A stretch of DNA of 63,701 bases, filler included, from Salisapilia sapeloensis CBS 127946 (lineage: Eukaryota > Protista > Oomycota): assembly GCA_023334545.1 (NCBI GenBank). It is 16 parts of 16 records of this genome, joined end to end, with 100 filler letters (N's around TTAATTAATTAA, not from the genome) between each part and the next. Parts side by side here need not be neighbours in the genome. Positions count along the whole stretch, not along the records: positions 27,852 to 32,580 come from JAADVB010000654.1; 15 more parts are not named here. One strand, written 5' to 3'. The notes under the pieces are model-generated. The model made no database searches. It had not been told where the DNA came from and saw only the letters and a list, made by a program, of their open reading frames with translations. Made by a program: the position numbers and the translations under genes. Below, in pieces: positions 27,751-32,580 of this stretch. The number at the start of each line of letters is the position of its first letter. The stretch's first letter is position 1.

Positions 27751-27927
27751 ANNNNNNNNNNNNNNNNNNNNNNNNNNNNNNNNNNNNNNNNNNNNTTAAT
27801 TAATTAANNNNNNNNNNNNNNNNNNNNNNNNNNNNNNNNNNNNNNNNNNNNAATGATACATGGATGCAGACGGCTACGCATATCTGCAGTACGTGTGCTG
27901 CATAGCTTTCCGCCTACATGGGTCTTT

Positions 27928-30185
27928 TTAAATTTTTGGTAGTCCACGCCGCATGGCTCGAATTTCAGCGGTCCCGTGCTTTTCCTTTAAACCACTTCTG
28001 AGTAGCTCGAGGATGTTAAGAGCCACGTCAACGTCTCGGTTCCAGAAGTTAGCCGTGCGCTTACTATTCGCACAGTGTAGAACGTTTCTGGTACATTTTA
28101 GCTTAATCGTTTTACCCGGCAGGCGTGCGTTTTCAAAATTTGTGCATCTCACCAATTTCCTCAACTCCTTTTCTTATGGACGTGTTTTGGTCCTGATGTC
28201 CACGTCGTCCTCATTCGCCTGTTTTTTGTAAAAAGGCGAGCTTGACGGAGACGCTGGTGACAAGACGAGCACTTCTTACTCGTTCGCTATTCATCGATGG
28301 GGATTACAGTAGCTCTTTTCTTCAAGGTTTTTAATATGCTTTTCACTGGACCTTTGGAATATCCTTTGGTGCTATCGCATGTACCCCAATCATCGAATCC
28401 TACACACACTTGTGTGCTCGGAACTGGCACGATGCGTTTTGCAATGGTGTCAAGAGCCTTTCATGCTCGCTCTCCTGCGCGTGAATCGCCACCTCCGAAG
28501 GCCTTCTTCTTCTGTGAACGTCAACATGAAGCTAGGATATTTCCAAAAGAATGGGAGGCGGCTGACGTAGTCTTCGTAGCTGGATACCTTGTATGAAGAT
28601 ATAGCGCTAAGGATTGTGCGATACCACGGCTCACGAGACTTTAAGTCTTCATGCCATTTTGTATAGTCATGGAACCTGGCTAGATGGCGATATTCTTGCG
28701 CGTCAACCGATATAACTTTCTTGAAGCCTTGCTTTTGAGTGTCCTCCAACGTATCGCTCTCAGCATCTTTATACGGAGATTTTTCCGACGCCGTCCTGAC
28801 CGACAGCTTCGCTTCAGATGACGGCCTTTTCGACGCCGTAGGTGCAGATGACCCACCGTTGCGGCGGTTACAGGTGTCCGCATCCCCGGGTCTATCCCGA
28901 TAAGCACGTCTGGTTCATATTCGGGACCTAGCTTAGAGAGTGCGTCTCTAAAGTAATTCAGAGGGTTTTGTTTTGATGCATGGACGCTTTTGGACACTGT
29001 CTTTCCATCGTGCTGTTTAAGTTTCTTGTTTTGGGCATCTAGCGTGACGTCAGTAGTCGCTTCTTGTAGATAATGCATCAAAATTGACACCGAATATCCG
29101 TTCGTAGTCATGTGGTTACCAAATGTCCGATGCTTAGTTTCGAAGGGTGCCACATTGAAGACTTTCCTTAGGAGTTTTTTCCGTGCACAGCAAAAGTTGT
29201 TTTACTAAAAGGTAGCTGCGAATCTGATTTAAGACGCCGATCCAACTCAATATCTAGCTTACTGCGCAGGTACTTCTTGACGCTATTGCTTTGGTTGAGC
29301 TGGGCAAAGATGTTGTATAAACTGTGAGGAGATACGGAAATGAAGAGTGGCTGATACGATGTAGAGACTGGTAATAAAGAGTAGAGTTTTTATCCCTTCG
29401 TACGCGGGTGTTTGGCCACAAACATCTTCATCCGTCTTAGCATATCATGTAACTCACGGATAAAATGTCCTGTGTTGCGTCAAATCGTATGTGGCCATGG
29501 CACCATAGCAAGCCAATGACGCAGTTCTAGCTTTAAGGAATTGTTTGTAAGATCCCACTCGGTCCAAAGTGTCCTGGTGTCTTGGGTAGGTTGACCATCA
29601 TTGTCTAGAATTGGAACCTTTTGAATCCGATAGCAGCTTTCAACAAGGCGTGTTTCTTCCTTTCTGTTCAATTATATCACATTATTCGTAGCATACCGAA
29701 AGCGGATATACTGCCGAAGCCGGCGCCGGAAGTGTAAAGCAAGCATGTTGCTAGCGCTTGCCTTCATCTGAAAGGCTGCATAGTTAATGATCGAACTTCT
29801 GTTTACAACTGCCACCGGCGTGTGGGCTGTATTTGAGTGCGTAGGTCTTTGTAGAGTTGGCAAGTCAGACCGAAGCCCGGGTATTTGGTAACGAGCGTTT
29901 TTTGTTTACCGTGCTTTGGGTTTGTAAGCACAGCGACCTCACAGCGATAAAGAAAGTTTTGGTCTAGTTGAGGTAAAGCTTCCCTGTCCTTGATGCATTG
30001 GCGAACATAAAAGTTTGCTAGATGTGAAGCTTTCATAACGACTTGACGCATAACGACAGAAACCCGTCGTATCTCATTGCACTCTTCCTGGTGGACTCAA
30101 CCGGGAAAATTTACAGGTGACGGTGGAAGTAGTCTTAGGGTCTGAGGATCTTATGCGTTTGGGTCGGCAAGTTACATTTCATCAT
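27928..30185 (-). mobile_element. Fanzor (Fanzor1-like; eukaryotic TnpB homolog) gene, pseudogenised
   Basis: Joining minus-strand frames gives in order ASHLANFYVRQC...LPQLDQNFLYRC, LHFRRRLRQYIRF, KLYSLLP, FGNHMTTNGYSVSI, RuvC-I LIGIDPG (D 28890-28892), LRRWRF, VCVGFDDW...GPVK, RuvC-II VIPIDE*RTSKKCSSC (E 28290-28292) and RuvC-III CANSK...FWNRDVDVALNI (D 28033-28035); at least five in-frame stops and about five frameshifts. The 5' boundary is approximate. Confidence 0.9.
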
Positions 30186-31953
30186 CGACTTGAGGTTGAA
30201 TCAAAACGAAACGATAATATAGGCATGATCTCAGGAAGTACGGTAGGGGATTTACGCTACAACAAACAAGCCGCTTCTACATTTTCTTTTGTTGACTTTC
30301 ATGATCAAAGTTTTAAAATTAGGATTACCTCATAATGCATCTCTTATTTCCTTTGCGCTAGAAATCTTCTTGAAGATGAGCTTGCGAAGCTAATTCGGAG
30401 GTGATGGCCTCCATCATAACGCTATTCCAATTTTCTCTCAACAAAGCGGTATTGAATGGACTGAGGCAGTCTAAAATTTACATTTAGAGGTCTGGCGATT
30501 GAATGAATTGCCGTATGAAAGTTTGAGTAGAACCATAGATATTCTCTCCAGTCGGCTATCTATGATCGCTCATATGCAAGATTGTAGGCTGTTTACCAGT
30601 GCTACGCATGTTCAAAGGAGTTCTCTTCTTCTTGCTAGCTATTACAGAAAAGTACTTTTTAAAGATACATGACCGGCACCAACCACGCACCCTTGTATTG
30701 CTGGACAAAGCTCCGCCATCAGGGACAAAAGTGGGTAAGTCAATGGCATATCGGCGGGAAAATGACAGTCAGTGGGGAATTCATTTTGAAGACTTAAAGT
30801 GGTGATGAAGATTTGTGGTGGATGTATGCACGGCCTAGGGGTAGTCATTCATGCCTACAACTTACGTATGTAAATTTATGGGAGGTATGACATTTGTGCG
30901 GAATCAAGGTGATCCACCACTCCAATATTATCGCTGTCATCTTGAGAGTTGCCTAACCCATAGAAATAGAGGAGAACAAAGCACAATTGCGTCAGGACAC
31001 GATTGCAGGATAGCAAAAACACTTCAAGTAATTTTAATAAAATCAGGCGTGGTAACCCATACTCTTACTTCCATAGCGTTCGGAGCGAAGCCACACATCT
31101 TAGATGTCAGATACGCAGGACTGCGCATCGATCTAAGAGCTAGCCTTGATATGCTGCGACAAGATAGCTAGTCTATTGTCGGGCTTTGTCGGAGCGTACA
31201 TAATGTTTCCATCATTATGCTTTATTCCATCTTTACGTCTACGCGAAGAACTATGAGAGTAAGCGTAGCGGCTTCAAAGATCGCATCATTTCACTTGAAC
31301 TTCAGATTAAATTTTTAGTGTGTCTGATAATTTCATATGATAGAGCAGCATTTGATTGCTAAAGATACTCTCAAGACTCTTCTGCATGCAAAGATATACC
31401 GGCTCATATGGCTTGCGTTGCCAAGTCGGAGTGTCACCCACTATCTTTTTGCTCTAGAAGCAGACTTGGTAGCTGAATGATCTCATAGAGATCCATGTTG
31501 GATCGCAGCACGAGATCTACATTACATAGGTCGATATCTGATGCATAAAGCGCACATTTGTCAGTAGAACGGAGCGTCTTGCAGTTTAGCCAAGATTCTC
31601 TTGACGTCATAGCACTAGATGACCCTCGCCATAAAGTTTACGGCCCGCACGAGCCAGGAAATACACCAACGCTATGACATAATTAAAGCAAACATATCCA
31701 CAAACTACCTCCACTTGCTCTCTAACACCCATCGACACGTCTGCGGGATTCCCTCGTCTCTATCCAACTCGATGCCATTGGAGGATTTCGTGTCTATCTC
31801 GACTTCCACCTTTATCACCTCTGCGTCATTGGGTGAAAATCGGCATTTCAATCCAGATGATCATAACCGACACAGTAACTTGAAGCGCATCCTCCTGTCC
31901 TTGTTGAGCTCACAACTCAATCTCCGTTGGAACTTCGAAGACTAGAAGAGACC

Positions 31954-32580
31954 ATGTCAGACACACGTACCGTGAATGCCTACGCAGCTTTTGAGCCCAA
32001 GGGCGAGTGCAAGCCGTGGCAGTATGAGGCAGCACCAGTCGGACCGCTTGACATTGAGATCAAGATCTCCCACTGCGGTATCTGCGGCTCGGACATTCAC
32101 ACCATGGACAGTGGATGGGGACCCACCCATTACCCGTGCGTCGTCGGTCACGAGATCGTAGGCACTGTGGAGAAAGCCGGTGACCAAGTGAAAGACATGA
32201 AAGTGGGTGACCGTGTCGGTGTCGGCGCTCAAGTCTGGGCCTGCCTTAACCGGGACGCTGACAAGCCATGCGTCGAATGCAAAACCAACCAAGATCAATA
32301 TTGTCTTCGAGGTGTGGATACGTACAACGACAAATATGAAAGTGGAGTGCGCAGCTACGGCGGCTACGCTGACTACGTCGTTGTCGAGCACACGCATGCT
32401 TTCAAGATCCCGGACGCCATTCCATCTGACACTGCCGCACCATTGCTCTGCGCTGGCGCCACTGTCTTCACTCCTCTCCGCCGATTGGGTGTCAAGGCTG
32501 GTGACCGTGTGGGTGTCGTTGGCATCGGCGGCCTTGGACACTTGGCCATCCAGTTCATCAACGCCTTGGAAGCGACTCCT
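31954..32580 (+). CDS. Zn-dependent alcohol dehydrogenase (CAD/ADH6-like MDR family), 3' truncated
   Basis: ATG 31954; CGICGSD, GHEIVG, four structural-Zn Cys (WAC...PCVEC...QYC), APLLCAGATVF and GIGGLG dinucleotide-binding motif. Confidence 0.93.

Follow-up and report, generated by a model that had tools for sequence, protein, structure and literature searches.

The minus strand of a short stretch of the genome of the oomycete Salisapilia sapeloensis CBS 127946 carries a string of small open reading frames (ORFs). The question raised by this locus is what gene they once made up, and whether any part of it is still in working order. The window (the whole stretch of DNA that was analysed) is 63,701 nucleotides (nt) long, and the piece considered here is window 27852-32580. 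A preliminary description, made from the sequence alone, had read the ORFs as a decayed Fanzor, a eukaryotic RNA-guided nuclease. The stretch is very probably a pseudogene of a Fanzor1 RNA-guided endonuclease, and the remnant of a small, non-autonomous oomycete DNA transposon of the Mariner/Tc1 type.

The six minus-strand ORFs named in that description (29803-30051, 29672-29863, 29480-29671, 28680-29153, 28450-28749 and 27928-28164) are all present in the ORF list, and their proposed colinear joining into a protein of about 750 residues is borne out by alignment. The pseudogene occupies 27943-30157 on the minus strand, in three reading frames, and corresponds to about residues 40-752 of intact homologues of 754 residues. 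In a frameshift-aware protein-to-DNA alignment, residues 40-752 of a Phytophthora cactorum protein (P0033; 754 residues, intact and intron-less) align colinearly with 30157-27943, with 48% identity over 702 aligned codons. Residues 67-801 of a Globisporangium ultimum protein (P0028) align with the same span with 47% identity. With tblastn, residues 41-752 of the P. boehmeriae protein P0003 are placed on 30078-27943 by colinear high-scoring segment pairs in three minus frames, and the E value of 7e-105 ties the window to this family of homologues. The first 25-40 or so codons and the start codon are not recognisable in the window remnant. Among the residues that are invariant in the family, 21 of 25 are kept, together with 39 of the 54 near-invariant ones.

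The alignment passes five in-frame stop codons and six frame changes, and there is no intact nuclease ORF in the window. The stops (all on the minus strand) are TAA at 29672-29674, TGA at 29480-29482, TAA at 29390-29392, TAG at 28287-28289 and TAA at 28174-28176. Two of the frame changes lie near 30076-30079 and 29831, and the other four near 29187, 28771-28774, 28461 and 28213. Introns were considered as the cause of the frame changes and were ruled out. In P. cactorum and P. citrophthora the homologous gene consists of one exon, the gap at each change is of just 1-2 bases, and the RNA contigs over the remnant are colinear with it.

The catalytic motifs are still readable. Three-frame translation of the minus strand gives LIGIDPGMR, VIPIDE-stop-RTSKKCSSC and LHCANSKRTANFWNRDVDVALNI, in colinear order and in different frames. 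The RuvC-I motif GIDPG (28884-28895, minus strand) contains the catalytic Asp codon at 28892-28890 and the 'DPG' of the Fanzor fingerprint. The second segment (28260-28295, minus strand) contains the alternative RuvC-II Glu (28292-28290), the stop at 28289-28287, RTSKK, and the first zinc-finger pair CSSC (28271-28260). Six codons, one of them the stop, separate the Glu from the first Cys (28271-28269). The RuvC-III Arg-Asp pair (28033-28038, minus strand), with its catalytic Asp at 28035-28033, lies within FWNRDVDVALNI. The codons of all three acidic residues (28892, 28292 and 28035) are intact, as had been claimed. The loss of a zinc-finger Cys is equally clear. In the second zinc-finger pair, HCANSKR (28057-28074, minus strand), the Cys at 28074-28072 is kept and the fourth ligand is an Arg (28059-28057), so that the window reads C-A-N-S-K-R where the homologues have C-x4-C (RCTNSSC or RCTNSKC). 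The C4 zinc finger is therefore incomplete in the window, with three of its four ligands left (C-x4-R), whereas the intact homologues have all four. Such a three-ligand finger fits a decayed member of the family.

On the numbering of the homologue, the order and spacing of the Bao-Jurka pattern, D-X(125,275)-[TS][TS]-X-X-C4-X(5,50)-RD (PMC3627910), are kept, with D456, T639/S640 and RD at 722-723, six residues past the last Cys position. The fingerprint of Fanzors described by Yoon et al. in 2023 consists of DPG in RuvC-I together with a Glu six residues upstream of the zinc finger (PMC10711439). The two features occur together in fewer than 1% of TnpB-family homologues and, outside Fanzors, in cyanobacterial 'pro-Fanzor' TnpBs (PMC10711439). 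The Glu next to the zinc finger is indeed present here, but it does not define Fanzors by itself, as the preliminary description had it, being common to those cyanobacterial proteins.

The assignment to Fanzor1 goes through the homologues, because separate fragments of the window gave no Pfam or Protein Data Bank (PDB) match. In an exhaustive HMMER search, a 173-residue fragment (28683-29201) matches 23 proteins, with E values down to 4.5e-21. Those with species names are hypothetical proteins of P. boehmeriae, P. cactorum, P. idaei, P. aleatoria and Nothophytophthora. A 755-residue P. boehmeriae protein used as query finds 36 relatives, mostly of 500-900 residues, several of which carry PF07282 (the Cas12f1-like TNB domain). 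In the public sets searched, the nearest protein is less than 50% identical over a matched stretch of useful length. A PDB sequence search found nothing relevant for the longest window fragment or for the single homologue P0003. When all PDB sequences were searched with a profile (A1) built from 17 oomycete homologues, only two matches were significant, SpuFz1 (8gkh, 5e-14) and GtFz1 (9cer, 1.4e-12), in keeping with the expectation that the stitched protein would match Fanzors. An AlphaFold2 model of the homologue P0033 (not of the window), made on the A1 alignment, has a predicted local distance difference test score (pLDDT) of 72 and a predicted template modelling score (pTM) of 0.63. Its top seven PDB matches are all SpuFz, GtFz or PpFz, with E values of 1e-15 to 6e-13, and Cas12f follows at about 4e-4. 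The predicted fold of the homologue is thus that of Fanzor1, with WED, REC, RuvC and TNB and the Fanzor1 insertions, and the placement of the remnant in Fanzor1 is supported by length, modelled fold and sequence.

The family also bears on where the sequence came from. Fanzors are found in large DNA viruses as well, TnpBs have been mis-annotated as Fanzors (PMC3627910, PMC10711439), and some Nucleocytoviricota clusters are listed by a feature-based atlas search, so that a bacterial TnpB or a giant-virus Fanzor, present as a contaminant or recent integration, might be considered. Such an origin is hardly credible, however. The species-named proteins among the 36 relatives are all from Phytophthora, Nothophytophthora or Globisporangium, the others being from metagenome or run assemblies. 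The length of about 750 residues and the top structural matches are those of Fanzor1, not of TnpB or Fanzor2, and the 3′ RNA module described below is common to five Phytophthora species. Moreover, a partial zinc-type NADP alcohol/mannitol dehydrogenase gene (31954-32580, plus strand, truncated at the edge of the piece) lies 1.8 kb from the remnant on the same contig. Its best matches are oomycete (73% identity to G. ultimum, about 71% to Phytophthora and 67% to Albugo).

The state of the gene in the living organism can be judged from public reads. Four public runs of the organism were compared, one of DNA (X1) and three of RNA from another study; five runs contain the stretch. The reads hold, besides the window copy (W), a second copy (V) that is about 2% different. 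A contig of V (X5, 2666 nt) covers 27852-30147 with 46 substitutions. Its only insertions or deletions are the loss of one base at 29819 and one at 29985, and the insertion of CA behind 30079. V keeps the frame changes at 29187, 28771-74, 28461 and 28213 and the stop at 28176, and V is thus dead as well. As these lesions are common to V and W, the gene was already dead when the two copies separated. In the region of the other two frame changes (29831-30079), the window and V are broken differently.

At three of the window stops, V has sense codons, TAC for TAG (28287), AAA for TAA (29674) and TCA for TAA (29391). For the stop at 29390-29392, X1 contains both the window form and the sense-codon form (57.3 of a depth of 102 differ at 29391). 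No W-type contig covers the stop at 29672-29674. The TGA at 29480-29482 comes from the alignment, and no read difference at this site is among the differences listed. An RNA contig over 27943-29328 has six differences from the window, none of them at the stop at 28174-28176. The 'Tyr to stop' change of the preliminary description is present as TAG in the window sequence, but all four runs read TAC (Tyr), differing at base 28287. It is either private to the sequenced isolate, a rarer variant dropped by the assembler, or an assembly error.

These differences could be taken to mean that the gene is intact and functional, and that assembly errors, introns or programmed recoding account for its stops and frame changes. 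In favour of this, the second copy lacks three of the five stops, along with the frame change at 30079, and the stop within the IDE-stop-RTS segment is in none of the four runs. However, four frame changes and the stop at 28176 are reproduced, indel-free, in contigs from the DNA run and from the three RNA runs of the other study, and W-type contigs in X1 bear out the window form at 29906-30109 (0 differences) and at 29391. With 1-2 bases skipped the frame changes cannot be introns, the intact homologues having a single exon, and no start codon is recognisable. A functional gene is therefore extremely unlikely, and the earlier verdict that this copy is dead stands, with four frame changes and one stop found in independent runs.

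The resemblance between V and W ends at 30147-30148, inside the N-terminal coding region, as a loose end in all four runs that marks where the repeated unit stops on its upstream side. In the window copy the next 1.8 kb upstream are single-copy (depth about 42). Because the resemblance ends here and no start codon or left inverted repeat is recognisable upstream, W is broken or rearranged at its 5′ end.

On the 3′ side of the gene, conservation unexpectedly continues into non-coding sequence, a feature absent from the preliminary description, as seen on aligning the 3′ flanks of the window ORF and of the P. cactorum and P. citrophthora genes. In intact relatives, an RNA module of about 115 nt with three helices starts 20-40 nt past the stop codon. 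It is conserved 3′ of the ORF at seven relatives' loci (L001, L003, L004, L005, L009, L010 and L012; L002 repeats L001), the further loci being from P. capsici, P. boehmeriae, P. kernoviae, a Joint Genome Institute (JGI) metagenome contig and one more metagenome contig. The sequence of the module runs GTGGCTGG-AAAGAC-hairpin-GCGTAG-CCAGCCAC, followed by CATATATTC and by a third helix to GGACATTCTCAGTGCC....TAATA. Past this TAATA end, the loci of the relatives share no relatedness.

RNAalifold predicts three helices, with two-sided changes in 11 of 25 pairs. Counted on the named structure, 95.2% of the cells are paired, compared to 31-46% with the partners slid, and two-sided changes are found in 12 pairs compared to 1-3; the observed values are reached by none of 500 shuffles. 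The folding energy of the 53-nt core alone is unexceptional (z -1.1), with z -2.5 for the 94-nt tail, and the case for an RNA structure rests on covariation rather than on energy. Rfam and tRNA scans of the whole piece had no match. A covariance model built without the window sequence has a single match in the window, running from 27922 down on the minus strand (37 bits, E 1.5e-6, model positions 1-67); beyond model position 67 the match enters an artificial linker and was disregarded. The model also matches the independent locus L012 at 122 bits. A metagenome scan with the window fragment had no match, and one with the family alignment found one locus, L012.

The alignments (A3/A4), RNAalifold and the covariance model together place the 5′ two thirds of the module at 27852-27922 on the minus strand. 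Helix 1 (27917-27910 with 27873-27866) and helix 2 (27904-27897 with 27889-27882) are both pairable in the window. Helix 3 and the right end of the element would fall past the edge of the piece at 27852.

Two observations on the module concern other loci. In the JGI metagenome contig, a called gene of 906 residues reads through the conserved RNA module (L009:3877-3997); the true end of this ORF is probably near 3870 and the extra 100 or so residues an annotation artefact. In a second subfamily (P. boehmeriae P0003 and P0026), there are weak matches to the RNA model past the ORF, at L007:4283-4384 (E 0.038) and L011:3797-3912 (E 0.006), and the scaffold of this subfamily appears from its sequence to have diverged so far that a separate RNA model would be called for.

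The 53-nt core of the module (27868-27920), comprising helices 1 and 2, recurs in this organism within different surrounding sequence (loose ends at 27868 and 27920). Its summed contig depth in X1 is 395, compared to about 42 for single-copy DNA (about 9-fold), and its summed depth in the RNA runs is 709, 82 and 67, compared to 20-46 over the ORF. On both sides of the core these contigs differ from the window, but their downstream part is similar to the family consensus. This hints that the genome contains several family members of greater divergence, one or more of which would be expressed; it is suggestive only, as the depths are summed over contigs.

The core raises the possibility that the locus, though its protein is dead, survives as a donor of guide RNA, used in trans by an intact Fanzor1 encoded elsewhere. 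All pairs of helices 1 and 2 can form in the window, and pairs have changed on both sides compared to Phytophthora; this, the RNA-run depths and the presence of the core in other genomic contexts speak for such a role. On the other hand, the depth is summed over all contigs that share the core and is not assignable to the window locus. The copies are about 2% apart, too recent for neutral decay, so that retention of the module is no evidence of selection. In addition, helix 3 and the end of the element are outside the piece, and the public sets searched yielded no intact Fanzor1 from this organism. A surviving donor role for this locus is thus very unlikely. The earlier suggestion of a Fanzor family with intact members in this genome is upheld in part, since the multi-copy RNA core indicates a family indirectly, but the near-identical second copy is dead and no intact member was found. 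A broader version, in which the genome holds about ten Fanzor1/Mariner-type elements with a near-identical and RNA-abundant core, some of them intact and active, and with dead copies perhaps serving as guide donors in trans, is doubtful, though it has an appreciable chance of being right. If true, this oomycete would offer a natural case for studying the role that Fanzor1 plays for its transposon.

The reading of the stretch as a transposon remnant draws on the ends of the related elements. Terminal inverted repeats of about 25 nt are present in the relatives L001, L005, L009 and L010, with the left arm TATTA....GGCACTGAGAATGTCC located 90-1300 nt upstream of the ORF in the four loci. The last 25 nt of the RNA module are the right arm of the inverted repeat, within the last helix. 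In P. cactorum (L001) the repeats are at 3929-3953 and 7379-7403. The window piece contains only short, chance-level inverted pairs, and the Phytophthora inverted-repeat consensus has 0 matches in the window by pattern search, with no left inverted repeat in 30100-31930. The local alignment score of the 3′ tail against the upstream 1.8 kb is at the level of shuffled sequence.

The intact relatives are single-exon genes for proteins of about 750-800 residues, located between terminal inverted repeats of about 25 nt. By analogy with characterised Fanzor1/TnpB systems, the RNA module would be the omega RNA or right-end RNA (reRNA) scaffold. It would be transcribed through the transposon end, with the flanking sequence serving as guide, and matching DNA would be cut by the RuvC D-E-D site of the intact Fanzor1 protein. 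With its stops, its frame changes, the missing start and the lost zinc ligand, the window copy cannot give a protein, but the catalytic D, E and D codons and RNA helices 1 and 2 can still be read.

Several points weigh against this reading of the locus as a Fanzor1 pseudogene and transposon remnant. Pfam searches with ten separate window fragments found nothing relevant. The piece shows neither an inverted repeat nor a target-site duplication nor a transposase, and the right end of the element lies past 27852. The window base at 28287 or at 29674 is in no contig of any of the four runs, and these two stops (28289 and 29674) may be peculiar to the isolate that was sequenced, or may be assembly errors. 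The RNA-run contigs (depth about 20) represent sequence present in RNA libraries rather than a defined transcript. Finally, the case for the module as a likely omega/reRNA scaffold draws on position, structure and analogy.

The sequence around the remnant contains further transcribed regions. The dehydrogenase gene has a very high depth in the RNA runs, about 1200-1400. Upstream of the Fanzor remnant, 30329-31571 (minus strand) is covered by a low-level, alternatively spliced transcript. Minus-strand joints with GT..AG ends, which skip 30422-30481, 30471-30533 and 30471-30596, are present in RNA-run contigs and absent from the DNA run. All splice forms of these upstream transcripts (30329-31571, minus strand) were examined and none has an ORF of more than 68 codons. 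At the other end of the piece, a contig of two RNA runs skips 54 nt (27889-27942), with GT..AG ends on the plus strand, antisense to the Fanzor gene. The skip may reflect either an antisense intron or another copy with a deletion, and it takes out part of the RNA module.

The public records of the relatives contain several irregularities. The family member P0035 is annotated as 'DNA phosphorothioation-dependent restriction protein DptG'. P0017, named 'DNA-directed DNA polymerase' (1772 residues), has a Fanzor fragment as its C-terminal part, and P0047 (1210 residues; UniRef name heme haloperoxidase family) carries PF01328 and PF00067; in both, a fusion of gene models is probable. The intact P. 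cactorum Fanzor1 element of L001 (3929-7403) has as a neighbour, about 530 nt away, a gene with an RXLR domain match (2752-3397). In Nothophytophthora (L006), pieces of KARI-domain and DUF2817 genes are found on both sides of the Fanzor1 gene (460-1749, 4275-4556, 1-180 and 4677-6118), which suggests an insertion or a local duplication around the Fanzor1 element.

What the locus contributes is a dead Fanzor1 copy, an ordinary transposon relic, in an oomycete lineage outside the annotated species. The locus itself is of little consequence, since Mariner-type Fanzor1 of oomycetes was already described in 2013 and public databases contain intact relatives. A useful by-product is the three-helix module supported by covariation, a candidate omega/reRNA for testing an intact Phytophthora or Globisporangium Fanzor1. 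The covariance model also helps to locate elements and their right ends in oomycete genomes.

The closest known systems are the oomycete Fanzor1s of Bao and Jurka (2013), from Pythium ultimum (PUl-1 to PUl-6), P. capsici (PCa-1), P. sojae, P. ramorum and Albugo (PMC3627910). As the preliminary description stated, Fanzors are known from oomycete transposons, the Pythium and P. capsici Fanzor1s being located in Mariner-type elements with TA duplications (PMC3627910). The window belongs to the same family, its best matches being Globisporangium (Pythium) ultimum and Phytophthora with 47-49% identity, and has the motif pattern D...TSxxC4...RD in common with these elements. The inverted repeats of about 25 nt in the relatives start with TA-TTA and end with TAA-TA, and these elements encode Fanzor1 only, like PUl-4. 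In comparison, the window copy is broken, with its five stops, six frame changes, lost zinc Cys and no recognisable start or left inverted repeat. It is also cut by the edge of the piece before the right end, and for a housekeeping-type gene the proteins of its host reach no more than 73% identity to annotated species.

Structures are available for the Fanzor1s of Spizellomyces punctatus (SpuFz1; 8GKH, 9CEU-9CEZ), Guillardia theta (GtFz1; 9CER) and Parasitella parasitica (PpFz1; 9CF0/1). The P0033 model matches them with template modelling (TM) scores up to 0.68, normalised by target, and the catalytic motifs gDWs, DEYkTS-CxxC and WNRD are aligned. However, they are only 11-15% identical to P0033, and the oomycete proteins exceed the resolved SpuFz chain by about 150 residues. 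Unlike the solved proteins, the window copy cannot fold into anything.

The reRNA of the SfAV Fanzor1 is three-stemmed and directly 3′ of the ORF, with the terminal inverted repeat in the scaffold (PMC10711439). The oomycete module is similar, with three covarying helices and the right inverted repeat at its end, but it has no sequence similarity to the SfAV reRNA and no Rfam family, and the window has helices 1 and 2 only. TnpB (IS200/IS605 and IS607) and Cas12f have the core of a RuvC D-E-D site and a zinc finger (TNB, PF07282) in common with the window family. In canonical TnpB the first motif is D-hydrophobic-G and the Glu is about 50 residues before the zinc finger, whereas the window has DPG and a Glu six residues before it. 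The window family is, moreover, about twice the length of TnpB, and is found in a eukaryotic host, in the context of an inverted-repeat transposon.

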